NCBI GenBank assembly: GCA_043228905.1
Contig: JBHGNT010000005.1
Coordinates: 23,808,001-23,872,000 of the forward strand
Direction: 5' to 3'
Source of the DNA: Azolla caroliniana
Taxonomy: Eukaryota; Plantae; Polypodiophyta
DNA length: 64,000 bases
This document shows positions 14,794 to 57,486 of the stretch, in pieces. Under the pieces are notes generated by a model. The model saw only the letters and a program-made list of their open reading frames with translations, did not search any database and was not told where the DNA came from. The first letter of the stretch is position 1; every line of letters begins with the position of its first letter. The position numbers and the translations under genes are program-made.

Positions 14794-14799
14794 TGTAAC

Positions 14800-21084: not shown

Positions 21085-21090
21085 TAGCCT

Positions 21091-21162
21091 AGTAGAAAAA
21101 GGGACTCGAACCCTCAACTCCAACCTTGGCAAGGCTATAATCTACCATTAAGGTATTTCTGC
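21091..21162 (-). tRNA. trnG: Mitochondrial-type tRNA-Gly(GCC), degenerate NUMT copy
   Basis: Minus strand GCAGAAATACCTTAATGGTAGA...CCTTGCCAAGG...GAGGGTTCGAGTCCCT. Confidence 0.85.
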
Positions 21163-21804
21163 CAGCGGAACCAGAGCCGAGTGTGGTTCTTCCCCTGTAG
21201 AGAAAGCGATATAGCTTTCGGGGGAAGAACCGCAATGAAGACTTCATTGCAGTCTTCATTGCGGTTCCCTTGGAACTATTGACTTGAGACTTCGATGAAT
21301 GATCGATAGGTTCATGCCCGAAGAGATTCAAACTATCCCAAATTCGAAGTTTGGTGCTCGAGCTATAGGCACAAGTTGACCTGATAGACCGAACAAAGGC
21401 TAGTAAAATCTAACGCTTAGCTTAGAAGGTCGTAAGATTAGACCAGACTTTGCCAAGAAAATGAATGTAAAGCATTGAAAAAGCATTGCTTAGTGGTTGG
21501 CTTTGGCCACCTTTACGACCCAAAGACAAATCTTCGAGTTCCAACTTATTATCCTGCAATGTTACGGATTGACTGTTACTGGTGCTAGGTAAGGAGTTTC
21601 AGTTTTGGGCGTCACTTTCGAAATATCTCGAGTAATGGGTTCATGTGAGTGCATGAACAATCAAACTACTCTACTAGGTTGCTTCCCGACCGGTTTTGCA
21701 GCTTGCTCCCCTTCGGCGGTAACTTTTCAAGATATGACTTGGGTCAATGGTAAGGCTATTGACTCTTAATTTGGAGGTGCAAGGTTTAAATTCTTACTTG
21801 CACC

Positions 21805-36101: not shown

Positions 36102-39100
36102 TGTTTGGAATATGTCCCTCCAGTGGGAGGAAGCGACTGTTCGGAAGGAGCCGACACTCGAAGAGTCGAAGGAACCAAATGTTCGGAAATAGTCAACAGT
36201 CAAAGAGTCGAAAACAAAGAGTCGATTGTTTAAACAGATTATCATTAATGTTATAGTAATAATAATAGTAATGATATGTAGCAGTGGCTACATTAGTAAA
36301 TAGTCATATGATGTATCAGAATATATACATCTAGGGCAAACAGACGCGGTGTGTGTGTAGAACAGATGTAGCACGAGAGCTTGAGGTATAGAGAGTGAGT
36401 GAGAGCGGCACCATAACAGTGTGTGTAACAGCAAACACCAAGATCCCTGTGTGGCTAATACACTCGAGGAAGTGTTGTAATCTCATTGTTGTATATCCAC
36501 TATACATAGTGAAGCTCTGTTCTTGTGGTTTTCTCCCGTTTTAGGGTTTTCCATGTTAAATCTTTGCGCACCATTGTTGTCCTGTTTTCTGGCATATCTG
36601 TGATTTGTATTTCAGCACAGTCCTCTTATTATGATTTGACCAAACAATTTCCCTACAAACTGGTATCAGAGGTTGGGGTGCAAGCATGGAAGGAGGTGTG
36701 AGCGGTTTCCCAGGTATGATAGTTCTAAACTCACAGAACTATGCAGATTGGAAGATAAAGATGGAAGACCTCCCCATCTTTGAAAGACTTGTACGAGCCA
36801 GTTGACAGAGCATATATACCCACAGGGGTATTGGAGTCGGATTGGAAACTTCTAAACAGAAAGGTAGTGGCCACCATCCGACAGTGCATTGACGTAAGTG
36901 TCCTTCAACATGTGGCGAACGACACAAATGCCCAAGAGATGTGGCAGAAGTTGTCAGGTCTGTATGAGAGGAAGAACGTGCTCAATAAAACCTCGTTGAT
37001 GAGAAAAATCGTAATGCTGAAATACAGAGACGGTGAGAGCATCGTTGAACACATCAGCACGTTCATGGGGTATGTAAATCAACTTGTTGCAACCAAGTTT
37101 CCCTTGGACGATGTAATGCACTTCCAAAAGGACTGTCGACACATGAGAAAAGACAAAGGTGTCGGAAACAATGTCGAACCCTGGGAGATTCCTGATGAGA
37201 AGAACACTTCTGCCATTGCTACGAGCAATGAAGAACTGTTGTTCATCTGTGAACAGACAAGTGCAAATCTTGCAAGTGAAGAATGCACTTGGGTGATCGA
37301 TTCTGGGGCATCGTTCCACATAACTCCATTGAGAGAGTATTTCTCGACTTACATAGCCGGAGATCACGGTTATGTGAAAATGGGTGATAGTGGAGAATGC
37401 AAGATAGCCGGAGTCGGAAGTGTCCGCTTGACGACGTTCACAGGGTGTTGACTGAATCAGAAGGATGTTCGACACGTCCCCGATATCAGATTGAATCTCA
37501 TATCGACTGGAAGGTTAGATGACGAAGGCTATAGTGGTAGCTTTTGGAATTGCAAGTGGAAGTTCTACCGAGGAAATCTTATAGTGGCTCGAGCATAGAA
37601 AGAAGGCACATTATATATGATGCATGCACGACTGTGCAAATTGGAAGTAAATGTGGCAGCTTACTCGGCAGGAGAAATATGGCATAAGAGGCTAGGCCAC
37701 ATGAGTGAGAAGGGAATGCACTTACTAGCAAACAAGAAACTTCTACCAAAAGTCAAGGGAGTGCACCTAGAGAAGTGTGCCAGTCACTGCTTAGTCGAAA
37801 AGTAGAATAGAGCAGCATTCCACACAAGACCACCAAGGAGAAGAGAAGTGTCACTTGAACTGGTACACACGGATGTGTGTTATGTGGATGCTCCATCGCA
37901 TTGAGGTGGGCAGTACTTTGTGACGTTCATTGACGACTATAGTCGGAAGACATGGGCCTTCGTACTGAAGTCGAAGGATCAAGTACTGTCATTTTTCAAC
38001 GAGTTCCAAGCTAGAGCTGAAGAGAGTCTGGTCGAAAGTTGAAGGCTATCCGAACCGACAACGGTGGCGAATATAGAGGGCAATTCGAGGAATACTGCAA
38101 GTGCCAAGGTATTCAGATCGAATACACAGTGCCAAAGACCCCAAAGTTAAACGGGCTTGCAGAGAGGATGAATCGAACAATCATGGAGAGGGTAAGGAGC
38201 GTGCTCTCTCATGCGAAACTGCCAAAATCCTATTGGGCTGAGGTGATGTACATGTTACCCGCAAGAATATACAGGGAGGCATAAGGATATGTGTAATGAT
38301 GTGGTTGATGTGTATGTGTAAAGTAAATAAGTGTGTGAGGATAAGTATGTGTATGGACACATGCACAATTATGTGCATGTGTACAAGAATGTGTAATGGT
38401 CTTATTTATAACGGTCATGTAACCGTTACATTTGATGTATTATATAAACCCCCTATGGGGTATGTAATGAGATAACCTTTTTCCCCCTCTTACAGTTGTG
38501 TCATTTTCTATTTGTCTTTCTCTCTAGCTCTCTCACTATAGTAACCCCCTTGGGAGGAAGGCTTCACCCCCCCACCCCACTTTTGGCACGCCTGAACGGC
38601 CGACCCTCCCTTGAGAAGAAGTCACTCCATCATTCTCCCTCTCCATCAGTAATCTCTATCTCTCCCTCTCTATGTGTATGTTAATGTATGTGTTGTGGTG
38701 TTGGGCTTAGATTCTCTGTATGGTGATCTATTTTAATTAAAGGTTCTTGGTGTGCGTTGGGATTTATAGATTTAGTAAGATGAGTATCTTGTTGCTCTTC
38801 CCCCTATCTCTTGTGTGTTGGTGATCTGTCATACTTCTTCTTTACAAATCAACTGCACTTTGATTTTCTCTACTGTCGGCCAAGCCTAGGAGGAAACTCA
38901 GACCACCACACCCACAATGCACGCAAACCTGGTTAGTACTCTCAAATTCATCATATTCCCATTCCCTTCTTCACCACAAGATCCTCTCACTCACTATCAG
39001 GCTCAAGAAGCTCCATCGGCTCCTCCTCCTCCTCCTACACATATGGACTTTCATCATCGTCGTCTTCTTCTTCTCTGCAAGGAAATGCATTGTCATTTCT

Positions 39101-40706
39101 CTCTTTGGAACCACTTTTCGTAGGTTCAAATCAGAACCACACTGTTTCTGTTGAGCAAACACGGACGCATCATCAGATCGATCAGACGCCATCTGATCCT
39201 TAGCGCTCCACTCCCTCCAAGCCTTCTTCAATATGGGTGATCCGGCCGTTGCGGCCGACCTTCAGAAGCTCGTACAGAAGCAGTCGATGGAGGACAAGAA
39301 ACAATGCGCATCGATCGTGCCCATACACCTTATACAGAACCAACGGTCGTACAGATGTGGCTATGGCGGGTATCTGAAAATGTTCAAGAATCCTCAGACA
39401 CTAAGGATGCGTCACAAGACGCACTACAGTGGCAATGGTGTCAACAACAACGACAAGAAGAACAATACAAGGCAATATGATGGATCTGAGCGATGGCGTG
39501 TGGGGGATGAAGAGAGGCGGTCGCGCTGATCCTGCGATAGTGGAGGTTCATCATTCTCTGGCAACAGCGTCGCCATCCCTAAAGGCGGGCCAGAACAAGA
39601 AGATACCATGGTCGTGCCCACTATGCAAGCGAGCGTTCAAGTGGCGTCGTACGAGCTTAGGCGGCATTTCGGACAGAATGACGGGCGCAAAGAAGGTCGC
39701 CAAGAGAAGACAGAAGCAAAGAAGATAGGAAAAGAAGAAGAAGAAGAAAACGAAAAGAAGGAGAAACGGATGAAGAAGAAGCTGAGTAATAAGCAGAGAA
39801 GAAAGAGAAAATGAAGAACAAGAAGAAAAAGATGCAGACACAAAGCAAGAAGAAAGAAAGAAGAAGTGGGAAAGACAAAGCAAGATGCAGACAGAAAGCA
39901 GAGAGGGAATCTTGAGGGCATCATCAGAATGTGAAGAAATGGAAGGGCATTCGACAAAATTTTAGAAAACAAAAGGGTATACATGAGGGAAATCATTGAT
40001 GTCACGACAAAATCAATTCCTTTAGCAAACTCTCTACACTCGTCTCTCTATGATATCAATTTGATGCAGAGATCCTAGGCAAAACCATCTGAGGCCTCAC
40101 ATCAAGCGCGAAGTTCTAGACGGAAGATGGGCAACAAGTGGGCGGCCATAGTAAAGTTTATCCCGAGCAAACAGCCACACGGCCAAGACGTGTGGCTGAG
40201 AGGCACGATCGAGAGAGTGGTCGAGAATACGGCCAACACGAGCAACCGAGAAGACGGCCGAGACGCATGGCCAAGAGTACAGCCGAGACGCATGGCCGAG
40301 AAGACGACCGTGATGCGCGGCCGAGACGCGCTGTCGCGTGGCGCGTGCCAAACGTCGGGATGTGCGCGTCACAAGCGCGGACAAGCACCGAGCCTCTATC
40401 CGCTAATGGTTATGGATGATGGGCGGCTGAAGTGATGCACTAATGTGGTTAGAGTGAGAGAGAGAGAAAAACAAAAATTGAGGAAGTTTTTAAGATAGAT
40501 AGATACATACATACATATCACCAATAAGATAACTAAGTTTGCTTATTATTAATTTTCGATTTAATATTGTTACCAACTAGGAACACGGTCTACGGTCAGT
40601 CCTTCGACCTAGACTTCCAAGTGACTGTGTGACAACGAATGGTAGCGTCTGTGCGTAATACTTAGTGGAATATTCCTCGTAACCTAGTAGGGTATAAGGG
40701 AGACGG

Positions 40707-41570
40707 TGTCGTAGTGTATTTCGTACACTACGTGAAAAAGTAAAAATAATATAACCGATTTAATTACATATAAATAAATAAAATGATATATCAAGATATT
40801 TATCACGTGCATAGGGCAGGATTCAAACCTTGTACCTCCACGTAGCCAAATCTCAAATTTACCATTATGCTACCTTATCTTTAGTGTTCTATAAATAGAT
40901 TTAATAACTATAAGTGCTTTATTTGCGCCTACCTTTATTAAAAGGTAAATCATGTATTTTTAGAGTGCGTGAATATTTTATAGAAAAACGCAAGCGACTA
41001 AAAAGTGACTCATGCACATCTAGCGTGCATGAGCACTATATTTAGCAAATAAAAGCAAGGATTAGAAAAGCATCACATGCACATTTAGTGTGCATGAACA
41101 TATTAGAAAAAAAAGCATGTAGCTATGCTTAGTCTCTCCCATCACTACATAAGGATGGGGAGCACAATGTAATAGGTGTGTGAAATATTTGGGAAATTGG
41201 ATATATTTCCTAAAACACCAATTAATAAAATATACTCGTGGGATTGACGAAGTTTAAGATAATCTATCTCTTTCAATCTAAATTCATATTCTTACATAAA
41301 TATTGATTAATGTAATACTTGTGGGATTCACAAGGTTTGATCTCTTTTCTCAATCTACTCTAATCTATTCTAAATTATTTCAATTTATTACTACGATTTA
41401 GATAAACTAAAACAATTATACTTGTGGGATTCACAAGTTTCTATATATCTTTCTTATAATCTATTCATATTCATAACTAGATTAGCCTCAAATTCTTCTT
41501 CCTCCTAGTCCAAAACCCCGGTGGTTCCCACCCGACTCACGCAAACGATCCGGAGCCGAAAGGCACGACA
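40707..41570 (+). mobile_element. Solo LTR (864 bp) related to the 48742-56007 family, inserted in the host element's 3' LTR
   Basis: TGTCGTAG...GCACGACA with perfect 4-bp TSD ACGG. Removing it restores a 450-bp LTR. Confidence 0.95.
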
Positions 41571-42034
41571 ACGGCTACAACCGAGCTCCTTTGACAATGG
41601 GCTAGCGCACACACCGTTACTTACTTCTATGCTCTCAAGTGTTACAGACACACAATAGATTAGCCGTAGCTACACACAGATATCAGAGAAGATAGAACTC
41701 TATTACGATACGTCTCTTACATTCCAAAATTACATGCTACCTCTATCAGAGGTTTTTTGCCCTTTATATACGCAGGGTCTTTTAGCCGTTCACGTTTCCC
41801 GCGTGAACCGTTACATGCATTACAATATTATACTATTCCGTATTCCTGCACTCTTGTCCGTTGGTTACAATTCTGGCGGACAGCACCTGGCACGCCTGTG
41901 GGACCATGCCATGGCACGTCGGACCCATGCCTTTAATCTTCTTCCAAAATGGCCCTGATGTTTAGCTTTGCTACGGTGTCCATGTCCGAGGACGGCGTAG
42001 GGCCGGTAGGTGCATCATGGTTTGGTTCCCCTGC

Positions 42035-44615
42035 TTAGTCGGGAGGGCTTCTCATGGTGTCGCAATCATCCTGTGTGGGCGGTCCGGGTTCTGTGGGCTC
42101 TTTTTGGGCTAGGGGGTTTGGCTCAACCGTCGGCGGGCTTGCGGTCGGTCGTGGCACCGTTTCATCCGTCACTTCTTTCGTGATGTCGGTCGTCGTTGTA
42201 CGCTCTAGGGAGTGGGGTTGCGGTTCCTCTTGGTCCACAACGTTCTCCGTGCGGTCGGCCGATAGTGTATGCTCCGATAGATGGGCTTCCTCTTGGCCAG
42301 TGGTTTCACTGTCTGGTAATGTGGGGGACTCCGCTCGCCGTTCTGCATTGTTCACCGTAGTTGTAATCTTTGGTGACCTGACCTGAGGTTCCTCTTCTTC
42401 GGCAGTATCCGGAATTGGTGTCGCGATGGATTCTTCGTTTGTTCGCGTGTTGTCGGCTTGCGTGATCTGGTGAAATAGATCCTCTTGACTTTCACCAAAA
42501 TCATCTAATAGTTGCACGAGTTCTTCGGAATGTTGGTCCGCTAGCGTGCGATAGTCCTGCGCTAGGTCCTCGCGTACTGTCGCAATGCTTTCCTCATTGA
42601 GTTTATAGAAACCTCGACCGTCTTTTCTCTGGCTCTCCCAGTTCGCTCGATACGCGTGCAATTCCGCCGCTTGTGCCGCCCACGCCATCCATCCTTTGTC
42701 TAGCGTCGTTTTCAATTGCGTTCTAAACCTCCCAATTCGTTTGTAGAAGGATACGCACGTTGTCTGTGATGGCCTGGCAACAGTTGCGTGCTTCTTCCAC
42801 ATACTTCTTGAGGTTTGGAATTTCTTGCTGACTAACTGTCGCCGCTTCTTCATACGTGCTCTTCATACCCGCCCACAGTTGGGATTCCTTCGCATGTAGT
42901 TCTTCTAGTTTTCCCATTTCATTGTTTAGGCGGATTTCGAGCTGATGCCTTCTTTCTTGTTCGCCCACCATCTGCTCTTCGAACCATGCTTTCGTTTTCT
43001 CCAATAAAACCCGGAGTCCCACGATTGCCGCCTCCGATTTTTTTGCTTCCTCCCGGAATTGGGCGTTTTCTTCTTTTGTCCGGCTGTGATGTGTTGTCTC
43101 CGCAACGAGTTTCTATTCAAGGGTTTTTACTGCCTTTCGGCCATTGGCCCAAATGTCCTTTTTCCTGTCTGAGGACTGGCAAAGTTCAGCGCGGAGGCGG
43201 TCAATTTCTGATTCCGCTAGTTGTACAACCCATTTTGCTTTTGAGGCAATGGCAGTCTGAGCCTCAATCTCTTCCTTCAAGGCTTCGATGGCGTTGTTTG
43301 GTGATGGAGCTGCTTGTTGCACCGTAGTCGCGTTATTTTCCAACTCCGCGATGCGTTTGTTGGCTTTTTGTAGCTTGGGTCAGTTTAACCTTCTTCCAAA
43401 CATTCTTATTTTTAATGGCCATCTCCTTGGCGCCCATGCTGACATTTGCCAGTTCCCTATGAACTTCGACTAGGGCCGCATTTAATGGGGGTAGTTCCAT
43501 CCCCATTTGGCGTATACCAGCGTTCCTCCGTCTGTCAACTCTGGCTAACTGGTCTTGATCGTTGCTCTCTGTCGTTTGTGTTAAGGCGCGCTCGATCATT
43601 TGGCGCTCCGCGTGCTCCTCGGCCATTCGTTGTGAGACCTTTATCTGTTGCGTTGCCAAGAATTCCATGAGCTCAAAAGAGGTTCCGAACTGCAATAGTG
43701 CGTTGAACTCATGGGCCATGTCCGGGATATCCGGATATGCCAAAACCTCACTTTCCGCCGTCAAGACGACTTTCCCTCGTTGTGACTGGGCCATAATGAT
43801 CGGTCGTGGCTCCCGGATTATTTCGAAGGTGGTGTTGGGCTCCGTAGCTGCGGAATTGTTGCCTACGGTCGTTGTCTCCACCATGGCGGGTAAGTCTTTA
43901 ACTAATCCTCGCCCATCTTTCCTGTCCATCCTCCGCCATTTCGGCCAGGGGCTTTCCTGCTGTGGTTCGGCGTCTGGCTCTGGTGCCACTTCCTTGGAGC
44001 ACACCGCCTGCTTTTTCGGCGTTGTCCGTGTGTCCGGCTGGGCGGGTTGGGGTTCATCCTCCCACTCTATGGTGGCTAACTCTGCTAACCTGTGCTTCGC
44101 AGATCGAGGCGGCGACGTGGGCCTACTGGGTTGACGTGCCGACTGGCCTCGAGGTGGGAATAGTACCGCCAGGTAATGTTGTATGATAGGTCTGAGCTTC
44201 TTGCCTCCTTGAAACGCTCGACCGTACGCACTTCAAAGGTATCAATAATGATACCTGCCTTCTGCTTGGGCATCCCATATGCGTTTACATGTACGCATCC
44301 GACCTCTAATAGGAACTTGGCAACTTCGCGGAAAAAGGGATCCGGGATCTCCTTCGTTCTATATGCCTTGGCGGAGGACAAATATGGACCAAAATATCTC
44401 TGCAGCGACTCTGCATGAGGGATTTTGAAATGCCTTTCACCTAGATATGACAGGTCCAACTTTTTCCGGATGGATGAGTTGGTGACTGTGTCGATATTGA
44501 GCTTTCTGGCAATGTCCAATGCATCCGGGTATGGAGGTGCCTCTACGATCATGATGTACCCATCCAGGCGTTTCTCCACGAGCCATCGACGTAAGGCGGT
44601 AGAGATTAATCTCGG
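42035..44615 (-). pseudogene. Frameshifted extra ORF downstream of integrase (globular N-terminal part, coiled-coil, Pro/Thr/Glu-rich tail); function unknown
   Basis: Consecutive same-strand ORF pieces 44085..44903 (distal part), 43333..44004, 43113..43343, 42723..43022 and 42035..42853, with heptad-like E/Q/K/L stretches. Confidence 0.7.
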
Positions 44616-47600
44616 CATAGTCAATTCCTTTTCCCGTGCGTTCCTATGTCGATCCACAAACGCTTTACGCCGCCGTTGTTCCTGCTCCAACACAGCCATG
44701 TTGTGTACGCGTGTTTCACCGAGTTCGAGTAGTTGGTGGAGCCGTACTTCCTCCGACTTGGCTTCCGATAGTCGGTCCCATACCTGAATCCGTAAACTGG
44801 GTATCTGAAACTCTACTAGCATAACGGCCTCCAGCCCAAACGCTAGTCGAAACGGTGTTGACTGTATGCTTGTTTTGTAGCTAGTTTTGTACGCCCATAA
44901 CACACTATGTAATTTGGTATCCCAGTTCGTTCTATTTTCATTGACGATTTTCTTTAATATGGTCTACAACGTCTTGTTGGTGGATTCCGCCAACCCATTC
45001 GCCTGTGGATAATATGGCGTACTTTTCTTGTGGACTACGGCGTAATGATATGTTAGTTCACGAACGACCATATTGAGAAAGTGGCTCCCCTGATCACTGA
45101 TAAGCTCAATCGGACAACCGAACCGACACCAGATGTGTTCGTAAAGGAATCTCGTTGTGACGGCCGTCGTATTCTCTCGTAGTGCCTTTGCTTCTACCCA
45201 CTTGGTGCAATAATCCGTCGCTACCAATATGTATTTATTGCTAGTATGGGCCGCCGTCGGTGTGAAGGGCCCCACAAAATCCAATCCCCACTTTTGGAAG
45301 GGATCTAACGGTAATACGGGCTGGTGTGGCATTCTTGCGCCCTCCGTGGGTTGGCCCATCCGTTGAGACAAATCGCACTTTCTGCAATACTCGTATGTGT
45401 CCTTCTATGTACTCGGCCACCATAGGCCTGCTTGCCATATTTTCCGGGTCGTAACATCACCCGCGTATTGTCCGCCTACCATGCCGCAGTGAGCCTCCCG
45501 TAAGACTGCTTCTTTCTCATCTTGCGTACACCGCGTCGCCAAATGCCATCACTACCTTTGTGATATAAGATTCCTTCTACCAAGCAGAAGTTATGGCTCC
45601 GGACGGCTAATCGTTTCTTCTCGTCCGTGCATAATTGTGGTGGAGGCAATCCCGTAGTCAAAAAGTATGTCCTTTCCATAAGCCACCAGTCCGGAAAGGT
45701 CGTTTCCGTTCTTCCTGCTAGTGTTGCTACCCGCAGAATGTCTGCGTCCGGAAAGTCGTCGTCGTCCTTTTGCACCGTTTCTCCATTATCGAATCTGCTC
45801 AAAAAATCTGCCACTACGTGTTGCGTACCCGGGCAGTGCTGAATTACAAAATCGAATTCTTGAAGCAGCAGCATCCATCGCGCCAATTTCCCTGTCAATG
45901 CTTGTTTCTCCACCAAATACAGCAGTGTCGAATGATACACGTGGAACGTGAATTTCCTCCCTAATAGATATTGCCAGAATTTATTGATGTTATAGATCAT
46001 CCCTAACGCCTCACGCTCCGTTGTGGAATAGTTACGCTCCGCTATTGATAATTTGCGACTAGCGTAGTACACTGGCCGGTACCAATTTGGTTCAGTGAGT
46101 TGCATTAGCGCACTTCCTATTGCTATGTTTGAGGCATCTACCAACACGTGGAATGGCTTCGCCCAAACTGGTGGTTGTACGACGGGTGCCTGCGTGAGCA
46201 TTATCTTGAGCGCCTCATAGGCCTTGTCTTCCGTTGCAGTCCATTGGAAGGGAGTCTGATGCACGGCGGCATGTAACGGCGTGGCGAAGTCCGCCAAGTA
46301 TCGTATCATCCGACTATGCCATCGTATTTGTCCTAAAAACCGGCTAAGTGATTTCATGTTTGTCGGAGTTTTGGCTTGAGTAATCGAGGAGATTTTGTTC
46401 AGATCGACCGCTATCCCTTCCTTGCTGACTATATGGCCTAGGAGAGCCCCGCTGGTCACGCCGAAGGCACATTTCGCGGGATTCAGGCTTAAGCGTGCAG
46501 TGCGACAACGTTCCAAGCACAACTGCAAATGCGTAAAATGGTCGGGTTTTATCCCATATACCGCAAAATCGTCTAAAAAAACTTGCATGAATGACAGAAT
46601 ATATTCCCCAAAGATCTCCGTGATTGTCCGTTGAAATGTCGCCGGCACCGTCTTTAGCCCAAACATCATGACGTCTGCCACATAGACTCCCCAGTCCGTG
46701 ACAAATGTCGTCTTCTCTTGGTCATCGGGATGCATGCGTACCTGGTTGTATCCACTGAATCCATCTAAAAAACTATACATGTCATGCCCTACGACGGCGT
46801 CCAGTACGCTATCGGTGAATGGTAAAGGGAATGCGTCTGTAATGGTTATGGCGTTTAATTTTCGGTAATCCACGCATACTCATATTTTGCCATTTTTCTT
46901 TGGAACGACTACTATCGGACTTAACCATGTGGCTTGTTTAACTGGCCGTATGAATCCCGCCTTTAGGACTTTGTCAATTTCTTCTTTTACGCGGGTCGCG
47001 TAGTTCGGGTTCATGCGGTAGCGACGTTGCTTGACCAGTTTTGCGTCGGTTGCTAAATTAATCTTATGTTGATAGAACTTTGGATCTAACCCCTTCATGT
47101 CCTCGTGAGCCTAGGCGAACACATCTTTATATTTCTTGAGTAGTTCGATCATTGCATCTCTCTGGTCCGGCCTTACTTCTTTTGCGATGGAGAGGAAACG
47201 GGGTTCTGACGTCATACCCACGTTTACTTCTTCCAGGGCTGAGGCGGTGAATCATCGTGAAATTTCCATTTCCCTCTCGAATGCTACCCGTGCTCTGCTT
47301 AGTTCTAATATTGACTCCAGGTTTGGTTCGTAAGCCTCATCGTGGAGAGTACTAGTCGTGGCATATTCTACCGCGGTTGCGATGACGTTGATTTCGAACA
47401 GCGGAATAATCCGAGGGTGCTCGTCTAGGTATGCCTCTAATTTTGCATCATCCACCCCAGCCAACATATTTATATCTTCCGCGTATAATGGTGTTATACC
47501 CTTGGATTGTGTCGCCCTTTCCTCCGTTGGTACACGAACCTTGGTGCGTCCGTGTTGAAAACTGATACACTTGTGTTGCCAGCTCTGCTTGATATTCGCT

Positions 47601-49527
47601 GCACGAAGCCACGGTCTGCCCAGCAGCACAGGGTACACCCCTGGGGCATCCAGGGCGAGGACTACCGCCGAGATGTCGAAGCAACGTACTTCCACGATAA
47701 TGCCTACCTTGCGTATCAACCCCAATGGTCGTACTAAGCCGGTATCTGCCATACGGAGCTAGAACGGGCAAGCCTCCCATTCTGAAATGCCTAACTGCTC
47801 GCATGTTTTCACGCTAATTACATTAACGCCCAAGCCACCATCGATTACGCATCCTGGGATTTCTTGACTGTGTAATATCAACGTAATAGCCGGGTTGTGG
47901 TGATCCACTATAGACGGTTCGTTGCTAATGTCCGTGAAATTCGTAGCGACACTCACCCCGGGTATGCCCGTCACCCGTTCTTCCATGGTCTGGCGGAAGC
48001 GTGGGACTAGTTGCAACAGCTTCTCCATGGATAACGTTATTTCGCAACCTGCCAGTGCTTGCCAAATGGGGTCCGGGGCCGGTCCTTCGTCCTCCACTAG
48101 CTCCATCGCGTTCGCGGATTCCTTCCGCATGCGTTCCGTATTTGTCGCAGTTGCTTTTTCAACCCATGCATGGGCTGTTCGTCGTATCTCATCTTGCGTG
48201 GCCCAATCAACCGTTTTTGTTTGTTGACGTGTTGTGACTTGCTGCACTTCTGTCGTAATCGTATTGACGACGAGCCCTTGCCCTTGCGTACTGGGCATTG
48301 TGTGGCATAATGTCCGGGCTACTGACAAACAAAACAATGGATGCTAGATTTGCCCTTCTCGGCCCCTGGTGGTGTGTGCCGATCCCTCGGTCTGGCTTTG
48401 TTTGTCGGAGCGTACGCAATGGTTGTTGTTGGTCCCGGCGTGGTTCTTGGTGTCGGTCATCATCCGAGCTTTCGTCATATCGTCGGTGGTCCTGATATTG
48501 CCGCTGCTTTCCACGAGGTCCATTGAAGCCGCCACATTTGTTTGTCGGCTGGTGATTCTCATAGCGCCGGCCCCCTTTAGTATATCTGGGGGGACCACGG
48601 TAGTCCTCATCCTCTGGCTCGTCTTCCTTGGAATCGTTGTGATTCCGGCAATTCCAGTAGTGCTAGTCATCACGTGGGTTGTGATCCATATACCGTGGTC
48701 GGTCTTCTTGCCTCCTTTGTTCAGTACGGCGTGGGGGACGCTGTCGTGCCTTTCGGCTCCGGATCGTTGCGTGAGTCGGGTGGGAACCACAGAGGTCTTG
48801 GACTAGGAGAAAGAAGTTCGTGAGATAGAGATTAATTATGAGTAAATAGCAAAGAGAAAGATAAGAAACTCGTGAATCACACGAGTATACTATATTAATT
48901 GGTACTTAGGATGTTAAGAGAGAAGTAGATGTATAAATCGTGAATCCCACGAATAATTTTTGTATTGATTAATACTTAATCCAAATAATCAACAACTCTT
49001 TACATATTTCTCTCCTCCTTATATAAGGAAAGAAGAGCTAAGCATGGCTTCATGCTTTTTTTTTACAAAAAGTGTTCATGTCCACTAAATGTGCATGTGA
49101 TGTTTTTTTCCTAAGTATAGGGCTCATGCACGCTAGATGTGCATGAGTTATTTTTAGTGTCTCGCGTTTTTCTTTTTCATATATTAAAAAAATACACGAT
49201 TTACCTTTTAATAAAGGTATGCATAAATAAAGGTCTTATACGTATTAAATCTATATTTAAAACACTTAAGATAAGTTAATGTAATGGTAAGGTTGGGGTT
49301 TGTCAACGTGGAGGTGCAGAGTTCGAATCACGCCCTGCGCAGTAGTGAATATTTCCTTTCTTTTTACATTTATGTCTCTTTCTTTTTACATTTGCCGGTA
49401 TGCCGTTTTCTTCCTTGCCGGTATGCCGTTTTCCTCCTTGCCGGTATGCCGTTTTCTTCCGGTTCTCACCGAGCACTCCATTCTCTATCCGGAGGGACAA
49501 AAATATAATTTCCACATAGTGTGCAAC

Positions 49528-52500
49528 CTACACTACGACACTCGCCCCCTCCAAACCCGCACATCCTCCGGTATGTGCCGAAGTTCTTGATTCTTCGTAT
49601 CCGTCTTCATCCGAAGCTTCCTCCGATTCTCCCCTTATGTCGACTATGAGTTGTAATCCACTTTCTTCGCTTCCCGCATCATTGTTGTCTTCGTCCGATT
49701 GCTCCTCGTTGTCGGCCTCGACTTGGATCACATAAGGTTTGTCGTCGGTCCGCTTCTTGAAAATCTTCACCCGCTTCCCGGCTATAGGCACTCGTAGTAT
49801 TGTTCCATCCAACTCGGACAGTCGGTACGTCCCGTTGTCGAAGACCTTCCGAACCTCGTACGGCCCGAACCACCTTTTCGTGAATTTCCGCATCGTTGTA
49901 TGTTGATGGTCCAAGCTACTATCATAGACGATCACCCAATCTCCTTCTTCAATCCTCCTCGGTCGTAGTCGGTGCTTTGTGTCGAACCGGCTTTTGTTCC
50001 GGAACCGTGCTTCTTGTTGTCGGCGTGACGCTTCCGCTACATCTTTCGGTCTTCCCTCCAGTTGTCGTATCCGGACCGCTAGTAGTTCTTCCCGGCTCAT
50101 CTCTTCCTTCCACGGTAGTATTGTCCATGTCGCGATTGCGGTTTCCGTTGGCATTACCGGTGCTTGTCCGGTCATGAGTTCTGCCGGCATGTAACTGGTC
50201 ACGGAGCTATGCGTCGTCCGATCCGCCCATAGTGCATACGGAAGCATTTGTGGCCAATCCTTCACCCTTCCGTCGCATGCCTTCGCAAGTGCTTTCACGA
50301 TCGGACTATGTCCTCGTTCGATCTTCCCGTTGGCCTCCGGATTGTAGGCCGTTGTCAACGTTAACCGAACTCCATGTTTGGCGAAGAATCCCCTAGCTTT
50401 TTCCGAGTCGAGTTCTCCCCGGTCCGCAATCACTTGTCCTACGCAGCCGTACCTACAAAACACTTCTTCCAAAAGAAATTGGCACACCGCGGCACACGTT
50501 TTCCTCCGAAGCGCTCGACCTTCAACTTGGTTTGTGAGATCTTCTCGAGCTAACACCAAGTATTTCTTTTGTCCAATCCCGGTCGGCATAGCTACAATGT
50601 CGACCATCCATTTGAAGTTGATTGTCGGTGAGAATGTCGGATGCAGCTCATCTCGGTGTCGGACCCCGGAGTAGACTTGACATTTCTCGCAGCTTTCTGT
50701 GAACTCCGCGACATCTTTATACATGTTCTTCCACCAATATCTTTGCTTGATTTTCACAAAAGTTGCCCATGTTCCTCGATGTCCAGCCCAATCGGATTCG
50801 TGGAACTCGGACATTATCCGGTTTCGTTGCTCTTTCGTCCCGACTACTCGAAGTGGTATCCCATCCGGTCTTTTCGGCGTCCTCCATATTAACCCGTTTT
50901 CCAAGAAGAACTTTTGGACTTGCCTCTTCTTCCTTCGGATCTCGGCTCTCCTTTCTTTATCATTGGTTGAATCCTCGACCTCTTGTAGCATCTTCCCGAT
51001 CATCAAGGTTTCCCCCTCGTATTCTTCTTCCCGGAATTCTCGGATCACGTTCACTCGGCATATGTGTTCTGACGTGAAGTAGTCTTCGGAAACTTCTTCA
51101 TTATCTGATTCGGTTATGTCGTCTTCAAACCGCGCCCTCGATAACATGTCCGCTACCGCGTTGTCCTTCCCCGAGATGTGTCGAACCTCCGGATTAAGTG
51201 ACTTGGCATATGCAATCCACCTTAGCATAGCCACATCCGGTATCGTACAACACCGCATCATCCCGAGTATCGGAAGACAATCCGTTTCGATCACCACTTC
51301 AGCTCCGATCAAATAATCCCGATCCGATTTTATCGCCGACACGACTCCCCACAATTCTCTTTTGACTTGTGCATATCCGCGTTGCCTTTCGTTGAGGACC
51401 TTTGCTCCAAATCGGATCGGATACCGCGAACCATCCGAGTCGGCTTGATTGATGACCCACCCGATACCGATTGGACTTGTATCAACCGTTACTATGATTG
51501 GCCGCTCGTAGCTTGGCTTCTTAAGTGATTCCGCCCTCCATAGTGTCCTCTTGAGCTTCCTCATGGCTTTAGTGTGTTCCGGTTTCCACTCGAATTTCTT
51601 ACCTTTCCGCAACAAGTGATAGAGCGGGTCCGCTATATGTGCATAGTGCGGAATCCATATGTGATAGAATGCACACGCACCCAGAAACCTTCGGACTTCC
51701 GATGTTGACTCACATACTTCCTTCATAGCTTGAATCGCATCGATCTTTGTTGGTGACGGTCTTCGGCCGTAGGGTCCACATAGATGTCCGACCACCAATA
51801 TTTCTTCTTGCCCGAATGCCGATTTCTCCCCGGAAAGTGTTAGGTGCACATCTTCTAGTTTTCGCAACACTTTCTCGCAATCATGAATATGGTCGACCAC
51901 GAACTTTCGGCATCCCCGATCATCCATAGTCTCATCTTTTTCTTCCACCGCGCATCCTTTCATCGGAATGTCATCTAGAAACGGCATCGTTATCTCCGGG
52001 ATGCAATCTCGAAGCACCTTGTTCATCGCGTTCATCATATGTGCAACCGAGTTTGTCGCTCCTTGTGGTAGTGTGCACATTCGAACTAGTCCTATCGGTG
52101 TCCGCATGGTAGTGATGTCTCGGCTCTCCACGGCTAGTTGGAATTGATCATACCCCGAGTATAGGTCCCCGATGGAGTATATCGCACGTCCGGCAAAAGC
52201 TTCCGCGAATTCGTCCACTATCGGACCGACTCCCGAGTTCCGGATCGTGACCTTGTTCACCGGTTGCAAGTCTTGGATGAATCGGAGTGACCCATTCTTC
52301 TTCGGAACCGTAAACCATCGATTTGAGTACGGAGCACTTGATGGCTCTAGAATCCCCATCGCCACCTTCTCCTTGAGCAAGTCGATGACTTTCGGAATAT
52401 GCGCCCGTGGCACCGGAATCGGCTTCAGGTTCCACGGTACATGGTCAATCGTAAAGATCACCATCGGCTCCACTATTTTCGGATCGACGCACCCTATCTC

Positions 52501-53139
52501 CCTTGATGTAAATGCAAACGCTTTGCCGTGTTGCTCCAACATCTCGCGAAACCGTTCTTCTTCTTTCTGTAATAGGAACCCACCTCCACCGATCCGAAGT
52601 TTCTTCCGGGTCTCATCCGTGAAGGCATGTCCGATATCCACGGATTTCCGAAGTGTCGGATCTCCCGAGACTTGTTTCTTCTTTTGTTCGCTATCGGCGG
52701 GTAGTGGTCCCGCGGCCGGTTTCACCTTCTTCTCCACGGTCTTGTATTTCGTACTTACCATTGCTTCTTCTTTGCGGAGCGCATCCGGCCCCATTTTCGC
52801 AACGATCTCGTACATCTCGACCGATTCCACCGGGACTACCCGGTTCCCTTGGCTTTTATCTTCCGCAAGCTCTTCAAGCCGTTGTAGTGTATTCCCATAG
52901 AACACTTCCTCGATCACTCCCACGATTTCTTCGTCTTCTTTTATTATTGATGCCGACCGTAACTTATCCTCCACTTGTCGGTATTGTTTCTTCATTCCTC
53001 CGGTTACGGCCGTGTACGTAGATGCCCCATCCGGGCCGATTCGTACTTGTTTTGCTCCGAGAGTTTTCTTCCTGTGTGGGGTATCAGGGCTTCTCGGACT
53101 ATCACTTCCCCACTCCGCAACAGTCCGCTTTAAAAATCC
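49528..53139 (-). CDS. pol: RT-RNase H-integrase, probably entered by -1 frameshift (ORF track ATG at 52995)
   Basis: DLYSGYDQ, LPQGATNS, FLDD, VDTSPIGIG, HHCC zinc finger, VDIV/ADRG/NGKIER. The -1 frame is open from the gag stop to the pol ATG; the stop codon lies inside the 3' LTR. Confidence 0.95.
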   Translation of the reverse strand, partial: GFLKRTVAEWGSDSPRSPDTPHRKKTLGAKQVRIGPDGASTYTAVTGGMKKQYRQVEDKLRSASIIKEDEEIVGVIEEVFYGNTLQRLEELAEDKSQGNRVVPVESVEMYEIVAKMGPDALRKEEAMVSTKYKTVEKKVKPAAGPLPADSEQKKKQVSGDPTLRKSVDIGHAFTDETRKKLRIGGGGFLLQKEEERFREMLEQHGKAFAFTSREIGCVDPKIVEPMVIFTIDHVPWNLKPIPVPRAHIPKVIDLLKEKVAMGILEPSSAPYSNRWFTVPKKNGSLRFIQDLQPVNKVTIRNSGVGPIVDEFAEAFAGRAIYSIGDLYSGYDQFQLAVESRDITTMRTPIGLVRMCTLPQGATNSVAHMMNAMNKVLRDCIPEITMPFLDDIPMKGCAVEEKDETMDDRGCRKFVVDHIHDCEKVLRKLEDVHLTLSGEKSAFGQEEILVVGHLCGPYGRRPSPTKIDAIQAMKEVCESTSEVRRFLGACAFYHIWIPHYAHIADPLYHLLRKGKKFEWKPEHTKAMRKLKRTLWRAESLKKPSYERPIIVTVDTSPIGIGWVINQADSDGSRYPIRFGAKVLNERQRGYAQVKRELWGVVSAIKSDRDYLIGAEVVIETDCLPILGMMRCCTIPDVAMLRWIAYAKSLNPEVRHISGKDNAVADMLSRARFEDDITESDNEEVSEDYFTSEHICRVNVIREFREEEYEGETLMIGKMLQEVEDSTNDKERRAEIRRKKRQVQKFFLENGLIWRTPKRPDGIPLRVVGTKEQRNRIMSEFHESDWAGHRGTWATFVKIKQRYWWKNMYKDVAEFTESCEKCQVYSGVRHRDELHPTFSPTINFKWMVDIVAMPTGIGQKKYLVLAREDLTNQVEGRALRRKTCAAVCQFLLEEVFCRYGCVGQVIADRGELDSEKARGFFAKHGVRLTLTTAYNPEANGKIERGHSPIVKALAKACDGRVKDWPQMLPYALWADRTTHSSVTSYMPAELMTGQAPVMPTETAIATWTILPWKEEMSREELLAVRIRQLEGRPKDVAEASRRQQEARFRNKSRFDTKHRLRPRRIEEGDWVIVYDSSLDHQHTTMRKFTKRWFGPYEVRKVFDNGTYRLSELDGTILRVPIAGKRVKIFKKRTDDKPYVIQVEADNEEQSDEDNNDAGSEESGLQLIVDIRGESEEASDEDGYEESRTSAHTGGCAGLEGASVVV

Positions 53140-55190
53140 ATTCTCACTTGGGACAAGAGTTCCCTCTTGTTCCTTTCGTGATTTGCCGGCACCGTTAGGA
53201 ATTGGACGGATCTCCCTCCGTTTTGGCTCCGAATTCGCGCAAAAGCCGCACCACTATCGAGCACCTTCGTCTCCATCCGTGAAGCCGTGATAAAGGGTTG
53301 GCCGAGGATGACAGAATGTGAAACCTCATCCTGCACAAAGAAATTTTGGTCAATTTCGACATCCCCGATCTTTACCGTCACATCCGGACAAGCCGCAAAT
53401 AGGTCTTCTGTCGTTTTCGTGGCTGCCCGAATCTTCCATCCATGGTTGGTGTTTATAGGCCACTTCCCCTTTCGGTAGAACTCCTTGGACATCAAGTTGA
53501 TCTCCGATCCGTGATCAATCAATGCTAGCACAGGTTCTTTGATGTTGCCGATTCGGACCGGAGTCTCCGTAGTTGCACGTGCCCAGTGTGGCCTTGTATA
53601 GTGGGAGTTCGGAATTTCGCCTTCCACTTCGGTGTCGTTCATTGAAACGGTATTTGCATTGACCCTTGGAGCATTTTCCTCCGTACTTTGTCTCTTCCTT
53701 TTCACGAGATCCACGAGAAGATCATGAAACTCCTTCTTCGCTATTCCGAGTAGTTCCCGCAGCGGAAAATCTACCCGGCTATCCAAGATTCTTTCCTCGA
53801 ACACTCTTTTCAAGTCGGTTTGTTGTTCTATGTCCGAGGCGAGCTTGAATGCCGGAGTCGCCTTTTCTTTTCCCTTACCTCCGGAGTTCCAGCTTTCCGG
53901 TATCTTCGATGGTCCGGCCGCATCCTCCGTGCGCCGTCGTTTCTCGTCCACATACACCTCATGTAATTGACACAGGGCGTATATGCTATTCTTATCGACA
54001 GGGCATTCCCATCCCGTAGCTTCCCGGACGCCTTCCGCGGTGTTTCGGATATCGTTGGAGTCGGTTTTCTCGGTGTTTCTTAGCACCTCCGGCCAGAAAG
54101 ACGCCTTCGCTCCCGTTGACTCCCCGACACATATTCCCGCGGTTGTCGCATAGTTGCTTCTTGCCGCTAACTCCTCCTCGAGCACCTTCTTCATGCCGCC
54201 TTTCCGGAAGTTCGGTCGGAGTGGCTTCCGAGAGTCCATCGAATGAATCCGGTTTCCCTCGTAGTAGATGAGATCCCGTCGTAGCGCCTCCTTATGGTCG
54301 TCGCAATCCCTCCAATCGTGTTCGGCGCTATCGCACCATATGCACCGTCGATCCGTATATTTGGAGCTTGTGGGGCGGTCATCCGACTTCTTCACGACCG
54401 CGATCTTTAGATTCTCCATCTCCTTCAGCAGCTGCTCCACCGTAGACGCGTCGACTCCCTTCTCGGCCGTAATCTCCCGAGCCCTCGGTTGATGGTCTTC
54501 CAGTCCCGTTCTCGGTTTCGGAATCGGTTCCGAAACCCTCTTTTCTTCGTTGGCAAGCCATTGCCCCCTCTTCGTGTACCGCGCGACGATATCCCGCACG
54601 CTTTCCCATGTTTCGGTGAGGCCGCTTTCGGTGGTCGTGTCCTCAAGAAGCACTCCGAGATCTTTCCGGTCCCGGACGTCCACAGCTCGCAAAAACATGA
54701 TGACTTTGTCCGGCGCAAGAATAGTTTGATCTCTCGCGGACAGCCTCCCGAACCGACTTTCGAATGTCGAAAACACTTCGAGGACCTTCAACCCCTTACC
54801 TGACGTTTCCACCCAATCCTCGAATCCCCTCCGCGTTGCCTTGGAGGAGTCCTCGATGGCAAACGTGGTCTTTAACGCCTCTTCGAATGCTTCCCACGTC
54901 GGATTTTGTTGTTGCAACCCGTGGATACTCCCTTGAAGCCCGTCGGTCGCCACCCGGTTAAAGGATGTCACCTGCAGTCCTTCCGAAGCCCGGCACCGGA
55001 GCATCTCCGCCTTGTAGTCCTGCAAATATCGCGACACATCCTTACCATTAAATTGCCCGTTGCGTTGCACGAGCCGCTCTACTGATGCCGAAATCTCCGA
55101 CATCGTGCGTTGTTCTTGAAGCATCCGTTCGAACATCGCCATCATATTGTTAGCTTGTTGAGCCTCCATCTCCTTGCCACCCGTCTTCAC
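53130..55190 (-). CDS. gag: Gag-protease polyprotein (first ATG at 55169)
   Basis: 686-aa ORF. Zinc knuckle CIWCDSAEHDWRDC; aspartic protease LIDHGSEINLM and VILGQPF. Confidence 0.93.
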   Translation of the reverse strand: MKTGGKEMEAQQANNMMAMFERMLQEQRTMSEISASVERLVQRNGQFNGKDVSRYLQDYKAEMLRCRASEGLQVTSFNRVATDGLQGSIHGLQQQNPTWEAFEEALKTTFAIEDSSKATRRGFEDWVETSGKGLKVLEVFSTFESRFGRLSARDQTILAPDKVIMFLRAVDVRDRKDLGVLLEDTTTESGLTETWESVRDIVARYTKRGQWLANEEKRVSEPIPKPRTGLEDHQPRAREITAEKGVDASTVEQLLKEMENLKIAVVKKSDDRPTSSKYTDRRCIWCDSAEHDWRDCDDHKEALRRDLIYYEGNRIHSMDSRKPLRPNFRKGGMKKVLEEELAARSNYATTAGICVGESTGAKASFWPEVLRNTEKTDSNDIRNTAEGVREATGWECPVDKNSIYALCQLHEVYVDEKRRRTEDAAGPSKIPESWNSGGKGKEKATPAFKLASDIEQQTDLKRVFEERILDSRVDFPLRELLGIAKKEFHDLLVDLVKRKRQSTEENAPRVNANTVSMNDTEVEGEIPNSHYTRPHWARATTETPVRIGNIKEPVLALIDHGSEINLMSKEFYRKGKWPINTNHGWKIRAATKTTEDLFAACPDVTVKIGDVEIDQNFFVQDEVSHSVILGQPFITASRMETKVLDSGAAFARIRSQNGGRSVQFLTVPANHERNKRELLSQVRMDF

Positions 55191-55203
55191 GTCGGGTTCA
55201 CCA
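55186..55203 (-). promoter_or_regulatory. Primer binding site, tRNA-Trp(CCA)
   Basis: Complementary to the plant cytosolic tRNA-Trp 3' end TTCACGTCGGGTTCA-CCA (recalled consensus). Confidence 0.85.
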
Positions 55204-57486
55204 ACTTGTGTCGTGCCTTTCGGCTCCGGATCGTTGCGTGAGTCGGGTGGGAACCACAGAGGTCTTGGACTAGGAGAAAGAAGTTCGTGAGATAGAGATT
55301 AATTATGAGTAAATAGCAAAGAGAAAGATAAGAAACTCGTGAATCACACGAGTATACTATATTAATTGGTACTTAGGATGTTAAGAGAGAAGTAGATGTA
55401 TAAATCGTGAATCCCACGAATAATTTTTGTATTGATTAATACTTAATCCAAATAATCAACAACTCTTTACATATTTCTCTCCTCCTTATATAAGGAAAGA
55501 AGAGCTAAGCATGGCTTCATGCTTTTTTTTTACAAAAAGTGTTCATGTCCACTAAATGTGCATGTGATGTTTTTTTCCTAAGTATAGGGCTCATGCACGC
55601 TAGATGTGCATGAGTTATTTTTAGTGTCTCGTGTTTTTCTTTTTCATATATTAAAAAAATACACGATTTACCTTTTAATAAAGGTATGCATAAATAAAGG
55701 TCTTATACGTATTAAATCTATATTTAAAACACTTAAGATAAGTTAATGTAATGGTAAGGTTGGGGTTTGTCAACGTGGAGGTGCAGAGTTCGAATCACGC
55801 CCTGCGCAGTAGTGAATATTTCCTTTCTTTTTACATTTATGTCTCTTTCTTTTTACATTTGCCGGTATGCCGTTTTCTTCCTTGCCGGTATGCCGTTTTC
55901 CTCCTTGCCGGTATGCCGTTTTCTTCCGGTTCTCACCGAGCACTCCATTCTCTATCCGGAGGGACAAAAATATAATTTCCACATAGTGTGCAACCTACAC
56001 TACGACAACGCTATGTGTCCATGTTGTGTACTGTGGGAGCGGCTCTGTTCAATATATTGTATTCGCACTGCTCGACTGTGTGAGCCTTCGAGTGACAGAT
56101 TGGGCAGTGGATTCGCATGTTGCACTCCAGTGCAAAATGCCCCGAATTCAAGCAAATTGTGCACTGGATTGCTTGACGAAAATGTTGTTCCTCGTCCTGA
56201 GGTAACGCTTGTCGTAATGAGGACATAGAAAACCTTTCCTCTACGTTGTCCAGCTCGAGTTGTAACGCTCTATCGATGACCATATCGGTTGTTTCCCCTT
56301 TCACGCTATTGTTGTTGAGCGTTGTCCGTATGGGTCGGCGTAATGCCGCCAGAAATGTCTCCCGTGCCTCGTCCTTCGCGAGGCCCCGTTCTAGTTTCCC
56401 CCGTAAATTTTGGAAACGTAAGCTGAAATCCATGATCGTCTCGGTCGGCAGCTGCTTAATTGTGTAGAAATGTCCGAGGATTTCGCGTTGTGAAACCCTC
56501 CGATGGAAGAACCGCAAAAAGGTGGACTGCAGTTGGTCGAAGGTCGTGATTGCTGGCAGATCCATCTGTGAATGCCAGAACGTCGCCCGCGCATCCAATG
56601 TTAACCCGAACTCCGTCATTTTGGACTGGTGCGCTACCGCCTCAGAAAGGCTCTGTGCCATGTGGTTTGCATTCCAGACATTGAGGAACAGACAAATGTG
56701 GGTTGCGGTGTCGGTTTCGCTGTTAAAGCGGGGATAGGCAAAGGCCATGCTGGGGGCTATGGCGGGCAGGGAAAGAGCACAGTGTTGTTGTGGTGAGCAT
56801 GCTTCCCGCGTATTGTCGAGGTATTTGGAGAGCGGGAAATCACCTTTGTGGTCCCGACAGGTAGTGTTGAGGTCGTTGAGGCGAGGCTTCTACCGTGCGC
56901 GTTCCTCTGCCTGGCGTGTGATGGACCTTGTGATCGGCCGGTCTGGTCGTGTTGGTTTTCTGGAGTGTCTGCAGCTAAACATCCATTCGTCGTTGTTCTT
57001 CTATGAGAAGACACAGATCACCAAGCGTGCCAAAAGTGTTACCAACTAGAAACACGGTCTACGGTCAGTCCTTTGACCTAGACTTCCAAGTGACTGTGTG
57101 ACAACGAATGGTAGCGTCTGTGCGTAATACTTGGTGGGATATTCCCCATAACCTAGCGACGTATAAGGGAGACGGTTACAACCAAGCTCCTTTGACAGTG
57201 GGCTAGGGCACACACCGTTACTTACTCCTACGCTCTTAGGTGTTACAAACACATAGTAGATTAGCTGTAGTTACACACAGATATCAGAGAAGATAGAACT
57301 CTATTACGATACGCCTCTTACATTCCAAAATTACACGCTACCTCTATTAGAGGCTTTTTGCCCTTTATATACGCAAGGTCTTTTAGCCGTTCATGCTTCC
57401 CGCGTGAACCGTTACATGCGTTACAATATTATACTATTCCGTATTCCTGCGCTCTTGTCCATCGATTACAATTCCGGAGGACAACA

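Follow-up and report, generated by a model that had tools for sequence, protein, structure and literature searches.

A copy of the 3' end of tRNA-Arg stands at the PPT position of E1, an LTR retrotransposon in the window (the whole 64-kb stretch of DNA that was analysed). The copy, GTCCCACAGGCGTGCCA, is 17 nt long, ends in CCA (41888-41904, minus strand) and is separated from the first TG of the 3' LTR by a spacer of two nucleotides, GG in sense (41886-41887, minus strand). On the minus strand the junction reads ...GGCATGGTCCCACAGGCGTGCCA-GG-TGCTGTCC, or in a longer form ...TTTTGGAAGAAGATTAAAGGCATGGGTCCGACGTGCCATGGCATGGTCCCACAGGCGTGCCA-GG-TGCTGTCCGCC.... The final 20 nt ahead of the 3' LTR have a purine fraction of 0.55 and a longest purine run of 3. 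An earlier reading of this DNA from its letters (hereafter the sequence-only reading) had described both a sense-strand CCA-GG-TG without an adjacent purine tract and a tRNA-Arg 3'-end copy in place of the PPT. Both descriptions were borne out, the latter by all 14 junctions collected here, each with a 2-nt spacer, and by sister lineages that have PPTs. With up to three mismatches allowed, the 17-mer occurs twice in the whole 64-kb window, against 0.13 occurrences expected by chance, and both sites, one in E1 and one in a second element, E2, adjoin the inner edge of a 3' LTR.

E1 is a tRNA-Arg-primed Ty3/gypsy LTR retrotransposon. The region 40568-57486 had been taken for a single element; instead it is a composite of E1 (about 8.8 kb), a nested Phygy-type element (48742-56007) and a solo LTR (40707-41570). 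All E1 features lie on the minus strand. The 3' LTR (40568-41885) is interrupted by the solo LTR, and the 5' LTR, whose start had been placed at 57040 and is corrected here to 57037, covers 57037-57486. The two LTRs are direct, have TG..CA ends, are 92% identical and are flanked by the TSD AATAT/AATAC. An Arg-type PBS after CTTT had also been read correctly: the spacer CTTT and the tRNA-Arg-type PBS TGGCACGCTTGGTG occupy 57019-57036, and the PBS matches the complement of the tRNA-Arg 3' end ..CACCAGGCGTGCCA at 13 of 14 positions. This PBS type, CTTT-TGGCACGCC.., recurs in many plant contigs. Pfam matches give the gene order gag - RT - RNase H - integrase of the Ty3/gypsy type, with Retrotrans_gag at 56011-56748 (split by the nested element), RVT_1 and RT_RNaseH in an ORF fragment at 45476-46873 and the integrase core rve in another at 44964-45371. 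The tRNA-Arg PBS and 5-bp TSD fit the criteria for TatIII/Ogre/Retand (PMC6317226, supplement 5); a search for the additional archaeal-type RNase H (aRH) gave no Pfam RNase_H match in any ORF of the degraded E1 copy. No homologues of the 3' ORFs of E1 (42035-44004) were found in L001 or L002, the two related elements described below. E1 is an old, broken and heavily disrupted copy. The motif of the third catalytic Asp of RNase H (within 45476-46873, minus strand) is HVYH in E1 and HVDH in all relatives, and the RNase H of this copy is probably dead.

The conservation of the block reaches well past the 17-mer. In an alignment of twelve E1-type junctions (alignment A1) the block reads GTGGG-TYCRN-C, followed by a 3-4-bp hairpin, CTG and TCCCAC-AGGCGTGCCA, and the flanks are not conserved. 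The upstream part in E1 (41905-41931, minus strand) consists of ATGGG-TCCGA, which corresponds to the 5' strand of the T-stem and the start of the T-loop (tRNA positions 49-58), and then the inserted hairpin GTGC-CATG-GCAT. The 3' part of tRNA-Arg, GGGTTCGA(A/G)TCCCACC(A/G)GGCGTGCCA, was taken from bacterial genes and from a tRNA-Arg(UCU) copy in contig L129. Against this sequence the block comprises positions 49-58 and 60-76 (T-stem, TTCGA, 3' strand and CCA) without C66, and position 59 is replaced by an insertion of about 13 nt directly after A58. RT normally stops at m1A58 of a tRNA. The caveat that the 17-mer is one nucleotide shorter than the tRNA was correct, since real tRNA-Arg ends in TCCCAC-C-(A/G)GGCGTGCCA. 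The tRNA-Arg identity of the block was assigned from bacterial tRNA-Arg genes, plant PBSs and the L129 retro-copy rather than from host genes.

We examined the folding of the block on alignment A1. The T-stem is paired in 92% of cells on the stated structure, a figure that is uninformative because the stem is invariant. The inserted hairpin covaries, one pair occurring as UA in five rows, GC in four and CG in one; its covariation score is 0.145, compared with 0.060 for shuffles (0 of 500 reached 0.145) and 0.04-0.09 for slid partners, and the pair counts are lowered by several rows that are misaligned by one base. Single-sequence folds of the block were not more stable than shuffles (z -1.1 to +0.4), and no acceptor 5' strand is conserved in the E1-type junctions. 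RNAalifold on A1 preferred another 6-bp hairpin (CTGT/ACAG), which lacks covariation and was kept only as an alternative. A complete tRNA fold at the E1 junction was rejected, as the interval 41700-42200 gave no Rfam match (E up to 10) and ARAGORN reported none. In L001 and L002 the T-arm mimic is not evident and other local hairpins are present. Based on this comparison, the block is best described as a partial tRNA-Arg mimic, with a predicted T-arm that has an expanded loop and a free 10-nt 3' strand ending in CCA.

A different fold, a minihelix with the stem GGCAUG/CGUGCC, had been drawn for the 50 nt at this site by the sequence-only reading. That fold is indeed the MFE structure of the E1 copy, but its stability does not exceed that of shuffled sequence (z = -0.74), and it is not conserved. 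Furthermore, it leans partly on bases private to E1, as most copies differ at 41905, 41906 and 41929. Because the comparison supports a T-arm mimic, an inserted hairpin and a free 3' strand, the T-arm-plus-hairpin model replaces the minihelix. Directly upstream of the block, about 45 nt ahead of the E1 3' LTR, lies a purine-rich stretch, GGAAGAAGATTAAAGG (41932-41947, minus strand), which may be a displaced remnant of an earlier PPT; the position of this stretch is not conserved in the relatives.

The loss of the PPT is confined to one clade. In a tree of RT sequences (quick IQ-TREE search, with SH-aLRT as the only support measure), E1 groups with L001 (protein P0009), L002 (P0022) and nine further proteins with an SH-aLRT of 99. 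No canonical purine tract adjoins the 3' LTR in E1 or in any of 12 related junctions. Purine runs within the final 20 nt of these 13 junctions do not exceed 3, compared with runs of 5-10 in PPT-bearing elements, a set made up of PPT-type relatives and the nested gypsy of the same window. A neighbouring element from Riccia, L007, has a normal PPT, ...GAAAAAGGTGATAA, followed by TGTTAG. The more distant L004 and L005 likewise have normal PPTs, AAAAAAGGGGTAA and GGAGTGGGGCTA, each followed by TG, together with tRNA-Asp-type PBSs. No LTR pair was detectable in L003 or L006, and L008 and L009 were left out as too short to reach the 3' LTR. Since sister and distant lineages have a PPT and the E1 clade has the block, we conclude that the tRNA-like block replaced the PPT within a single clade. 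The sequence-only reading had pointed to RNase H as a place where changes might be found; the RNase H domain of the E1 clade, compared with that of PPT-bearing relatives, shows no clade-specific change. The only fixed clade difference in the comparison lies outside RNase H, at E1 residue 186, which is His in 12 of 12 clade members and Tyr in 16 of 17 outgroup RTs. As a separate observation, the LTRs of L004 are 3.8 kb long (3935-7771 and 13741-17577) and 99.3% identical, and each contains a 692-aa ORF with no Pfam match.

The closest named relatives of the E1 RT are from liverworts and ferns. L001, from a different ENA assembly, is a complete element with the TSD TGTAG, an RT 57% identical to that of E1, the 3' junction GGTCCACCAGGTGTGCCA-AG-TGTTGGG and the PBS CT-TGGCGACTCTATTAGGG. 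L002, from a third assembly, also has an RT 57% identical to that of E1, and its junction reads ...GAGCCCAGCCGGGCGTGCCA-GG-TGTTGATCG. Genomic copies were collected by aligning Logan contigs from four runs (three of organism A, one of organism B) to 41580-42600. Between 2,500 and 4,000 contigs matched per run, in two organisms and several studies; the depth figures apply to single contigs and were not taken as copy numbers. There is no majority difference anywhere in the 17-mer. Within the block region majority differences occur only at 41905, 41906 and 41929, outside the 17-mer, and the majority bases at 41905 and 41906 convert the small-hairpin G-U of E1 to G-C. The block-bearing family has transposed massively with the block in place.

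A metagenome scan with the pattern TCCCAC-N(0-1)-AGGCGTGCCA returned three classes of match. The first comprises bacterial tRNA-Arg genes, which ARAGORN confirmed, and the second many plant 5' PBSs that read CTTT-TGGCACGCCTGGTGGGA. The third consists of ten eukaryotic contigs that have the 16-mer lacking C66, next to it NG and after that an LTR-like TGT... These ten contigs add at least five further kinds of LTR start. All come from one ENA series (ERZ1034375 to ERZ1034385) and do not represent independent species; they probably derive from one host. Additionally, the contigs were picked by the exact 16-mer, so that the invariance of their 3' strand is by construction and evidence comes only from the parts left free by the selection, namely the conserved upstream GTGGGTYCR and the hairpin. 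CCA and the LTR are 2 nt apart, with G as the second spacer base, in 14 of 14 junctions (E1, E2, L001, L002 and the ten contigs), and these junctions cover at least seven different LTR starts. Support across species comes from L001, L002 and the run of organism B. Together, the distribution of these sequences indicates that the block is a feature of the whole family and not a one-off.

One further contig, L129, carries at 1568-2154 an E1-type junction block followed by GG and an LTR about 490 bp long. After ATT comes the complement of an entire tRNA-Arg(UCU), which includes CCA and was identified by ARAGORN (2079-2154). Here a read-through copy of the complete primer acts as the PBS, in an apparent tandem or shared-LTR arrangement.

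The second element in the window, E2 (38253-59238, plus strand), hosts E1 and has a perfect TSD, GTACA. Its LTRs are 327 and 313 bp long (5' LTR 38253-38579, 3' LTR 58926-59238, plus strand) and its internal DNA amounts to about 3.4 kb, in which no long ORFs were found; E2 is non-coding. The spacer CTTT and the PBS TGGCACGCCTG are located at 38580-38594 (plus strand), and 11 nt of the PBS are complementary to tRNA-Arg positions 66-76. Directly ahead of the 3' LTR, the tRNA-like block (58868-58925, plus strand) reads GTGGGTTCAC-CGTGCAATGCAC-TG-TCCCACAAGCGTGCCA followed by TG, and the junction as read is ...GTGGGTTCACCGTGCAATGCACTGTCCCACAAGCGTGCCA-TG-TGTTACCC, the same architecture as in E1. E2 is itself inserted in a copia-type integrase reading frame, which brings the nesting to four levels. 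Its interior also contains a direct repeat at a spacing of 444 nt (57789-57926 and 58233-58379).

The CCA end of the block most likely serves as the 3'-OH of the plus-strand primer, supplied by either the genomic mimic or a second tRNA-Arg, as indicated jointly by the constant 2-nt offset, the lack of a PPT and the family's success. In retroviruses the integrase trims two bases from each end. The 2-nt spacing found in 14 of 14 junctions is thus the spacing expected between the end of a plus-strand primer and the TG that is left after integrase trimming. The sequences show the anatomy of the block, its conservation, its fixed spacing, its confinement to one clade and the lack of a PPT; that the plus strand would start at the block, and which molecule would give the 3'-OH, is inferred. 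Sequence alone cannot separate a mimic acting in cis from a second tRNA-Arg.

The reading that we prefer, and hold tentatively, is that the partial tRNA-Arg mimic does the job of the PPT, with refolded genomic RNA as the plus-strand primer. Minus-strand DNA would first be copied across the block, and the T-arm-like part of the genomic RNA would then refold off the minus-strand DNA. About 10 nt, AGGCGUGCCA, would remain annealed to the DNA and resemble a primer tRNA on an 11-nt PBS. The RT/RNase H of the element would cut some 10-11 bp from the base of the fold, after CCA, and RT would extend the RNA from the A of CCA, 2 nt upstream of the TG of the LTR. The primer RNA might later be removed by the same activity that removes the tRNA primer, and the integrase would finally trim the 2 nt. 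In such a scheme one RNase H 'ruler' could both make and remove the primer. Ty3 RT is known to direct RNase H cuts to a point about 10-12 bp away from a distortion that it senses in the hybrid, and similar sugar-pucker switches occur at PPT/U3 and tRNA/DNA junctions (PMC5371799). The 10 nt from the T-stem to the CCA end of the block match this distance. Furthermore, since the PBS of E2 is complementary to exactly 11 nt of the tRNA, the T-arm of the primer tRNA probably stays folded in this family. We know of no reason why a mixed, GC-rich RNA should resist RNase H, which counts against the preferred reading.

Of the three mechanisms put forward by the sequence-only reading, priming by a second tRNA and priming by a genome-encoded mimic stay viable, and pairing of the block with the PBS is disfavoured. 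If host tRNA-Arg primed both strands, which we consider possible but unlikely, a second tRNA would anneal to the minus-strand DNA at the block once RNase H had cleared the RNA, and the block on this strand would be a second PBS, CA-CC-TGGCACGCCTGTGGGAC. The upstream DNA sequence TCGAACCCAC could also base-pair with positions 49-58 of the tRNA, the inserted hairpin looping out across from position 58/59. In favour of this reading the element is symmetrical, with LTR-CA, a short spacer and TGGCACGC on both strands, and 11 contiguous base pairs could form with tRNA-Arg positions 66-76, as at the PBS of E2 itself. The motif of L002 contains CCGGGCGTGCCA, which is identical to the last 12 nt of the tRNA-Arg(UCU) copy in L129, and the motif of L001 is independent of L001's own PBS. 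Priming by a second tRNA would also explain the origin of the block, because such priming yields exactly a tRNA fused in sense orientation to the beginning of U3, and the insertion is located where m1A58 normally stops RT. However, the most successful families lack C66 and hence are not identical to the tRNA, and two different tRNAs would be needed in L001. Moreover, we neither know of nor found in the open full-text literature any precedent for tRNA priming on a DNA template in retroelements. The hairpin provides a further argument, in that the sense-strand G-U pairs of E1, L129 and L031 become A-C mismatches in DNA and L123 shows the opposite; with three cases against one, this asymmetry weakly favours a structure formed by the RNA strand.

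A role in minus-strand synthesis appears improbable. The block would either circularise the RNA by pairing with the 5' PBS or bind the freed 5' acceptor strand of the primer tRNA. In the latter case it would be similar to the 3' half of the bipartite PBS of Ty3 and bring the genome ends together for initiation and first-strand transfer; plus-strand priming would be left to another signal. About 11 bp are possible between the PBS and the block of E1 and of E2, the PBS of L129 is the complement of a whole tRNA, and in Ty3, which belongs to the same superfamily, the primer tRNA connects the 5' PBS with the 3' end (PMC5371799). Ty3 has a PPT too, however, and a minus-strand role leaves both the lack of a PPT and the constant 2 nt between block and LTR unexplained. 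Circularisation or Ty3-like bridging would be possible in E1, E2 and L129 but would hardly work in L001, which disfavours circularisation as a general function: L001 keeps the block while its PBS, TGGCGACTC..., is of another tRNA-Arg type, which is not complementary to the block and does not have the same acceptor stem. This PBS shares only about 5 bases with the complement of the L001 motif, and differs by transitions only from what we take to be the 3' end of tRNA-Arg(ACG). It is more doubtful still that the block is a neutral fossil, an ancestral retro-copied tRNA fragment with plus strands starting in it or at weak nearby purines, so that no tRNA-like property is needed. Fold energies that are not significant, whole-tRNA read-through copies in the family (L129) and purine-rich stretches 45-90 nt upstream in some members would all fit a fossil. 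Nevertheless, the block is kept across families whose LTRs and flanks have diverged completely, its hairpin covaries and its 2-nt offset is fixed, whereas the upstream purines are not conserved in position and, if used for priming, would add 45-90 nt to the DNA end. The age of the E1 copy (LTRs 92% identical) and its heavy disruption might have suggested a one-off rearrangement or an assembly artefact, but this has a negligible chance of being right: the data refute it, as the same junction occurs in E2, L001, L002, the ten metagenome contigs and, across several runs and studies, thousands of Logan contigs. Snap-back priming by the minus strand's own 3' end was also rejected, as it would yield hairpin DNA without one LTR and the L001 PBS is mismatched.

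Several features of the E1 clade resemble systems already described. PPT-primed synthesis in retroviruses, Ty3 and HIV-1 starts at the same site, directly upstream of U3 and a fixed 2 nt before TG, and its primer is leftover genomic RNA on minus-strand DNA, as it also would be in our preferred reading. In contrast to PPT-primed elements, the E1 clade has no purine tract (longest run 3) and has a CCA-ending copy of the 3' part of a tRNA. The block also resembles a tRNA-primed PBS, as its opposite strand presents LTR-CA, a short spacer and TGGCACGCC..., of the same tRNA-Arg type as at the 5' end. Unlike an ordinary PBS, it faces inward from the 3' LTR, and a tRNA would anneal there to DNA and prime the plus strand.

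The bipartite PBS of Ty3 and CYC5/CYC3 of Ty1 similarly offer a tRNA-related sequence near the 3' end by which the two genome ends could be joined. The 3' segment of Ty3 complements the T and D arms of the tRNA and coexists with a PPT, whereas the E1-clade block has the sense of the tRNA, replaces the PPT and in L001 does not match the PBS. For E1 and E2, pairing of the block with the 5' acceptor strand of tRNA-Arg is conceivable; the PBS of L001 is of another tRNA type. Self-priming of Tf1/Sushi is comparable in that an element-encoded RNA complementary to the PBS may become a primer after an RNase H cut. In Tf1 this segment consists of the first 11 transcribed nucleotides and primes the minus strand; the complement of the E1 PBS is found instead next to U3, at the 3' limit of the internal region, and not in R/U5. 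A precedent for an RNase H leftover without purine bias is the plus-strand primer of hepadnaviruses, although that primer is the capped 5' end of the pregenome, needs translocation and has no similarity to tRNA. Finally, the 3' tRNA-like structures of plant RNA viruses and the Mauriceville retroplasmid likewise use a CCA-ending mimic to mark the start of synthesis. These mimics stand at the 3' terminus of the RNA and mark where copying of the template starts, whereas the E1 block is internal, partial and without a cloverleaf, and would be a primer or a primer site.

The sequence-only reading knew of no description of this arrangement, and we found no tRNA-like element in the place of the PPT in the open full-text literature or in the lineage survey PMC6317226. 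The synthesis of plus strands from a PPT is regarded as a universal trait of retroviruses and LTR retrotransposons, and annotation tools depend on it; PPT-based annotation will mis-score elements of the E1 clade. A high-copy clade with a CCA-ending tRNA mimic at the PPT position suggests that the plus-strand step can be solved in another way. The clade is therefore a natural system for studying how RT/RNase H selects and removes primers. Plus-strand priming would be tied in this clade to the recognition of tRNA, an idea not far from the 'genomic tag' view of tRNA-like ends. If both strands were indeed primed by tRNA, the clade would represent an LTR retroelement wholly without a PPT and without RNase H-resistant priming.

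The gypsy element nested in E1 (48742-56007, minus strand) is apparently very young. It interrupts the E1 gag, its two 799-bp LTRs are 100% identical and its TSD is GCGT. Its PBS is TGGTGAACCCGAC, and it has a normal PPT, GGAGGGGGCGAG, with the TG of the LTR directly after it. Intact ORFs of 686 and 1155 aa contain DUF4100, protease, RT, RNase H and integrase. The solo LTR inside the E1 3' LTR (40707-41570, plus strand, TSD ACGG) belongs to the same family, with 81-92% similarity, and lies in the opposite orientation, so that three LTR copies of this family fall within 16 kb of the window. Phygy elements are defined by a 4-bp NCGN TSD and a tRNA-Trp PBS (PMC6317226, supplement 5). By the TSDs GCGT and ACGG and the PBS TGGTGAACCCGAC, whose tRNA-Trp label comes from the table in that supplement together with the sequence-only reading, the nested gypsy and the solo LTR are Phygy-type. 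Three to four tandem 23-nt repeats, TTGCCGGTATGCCGTTTTCTTCC, are present inside the Phygy-type LTRs (49369-49483 and 55836-55950). Elsewhere in the window, three tRNA genes (Asp-GTC, Lys-TTT and Gly-GCC) are clustered within 1.6 kb at 19577-21163.
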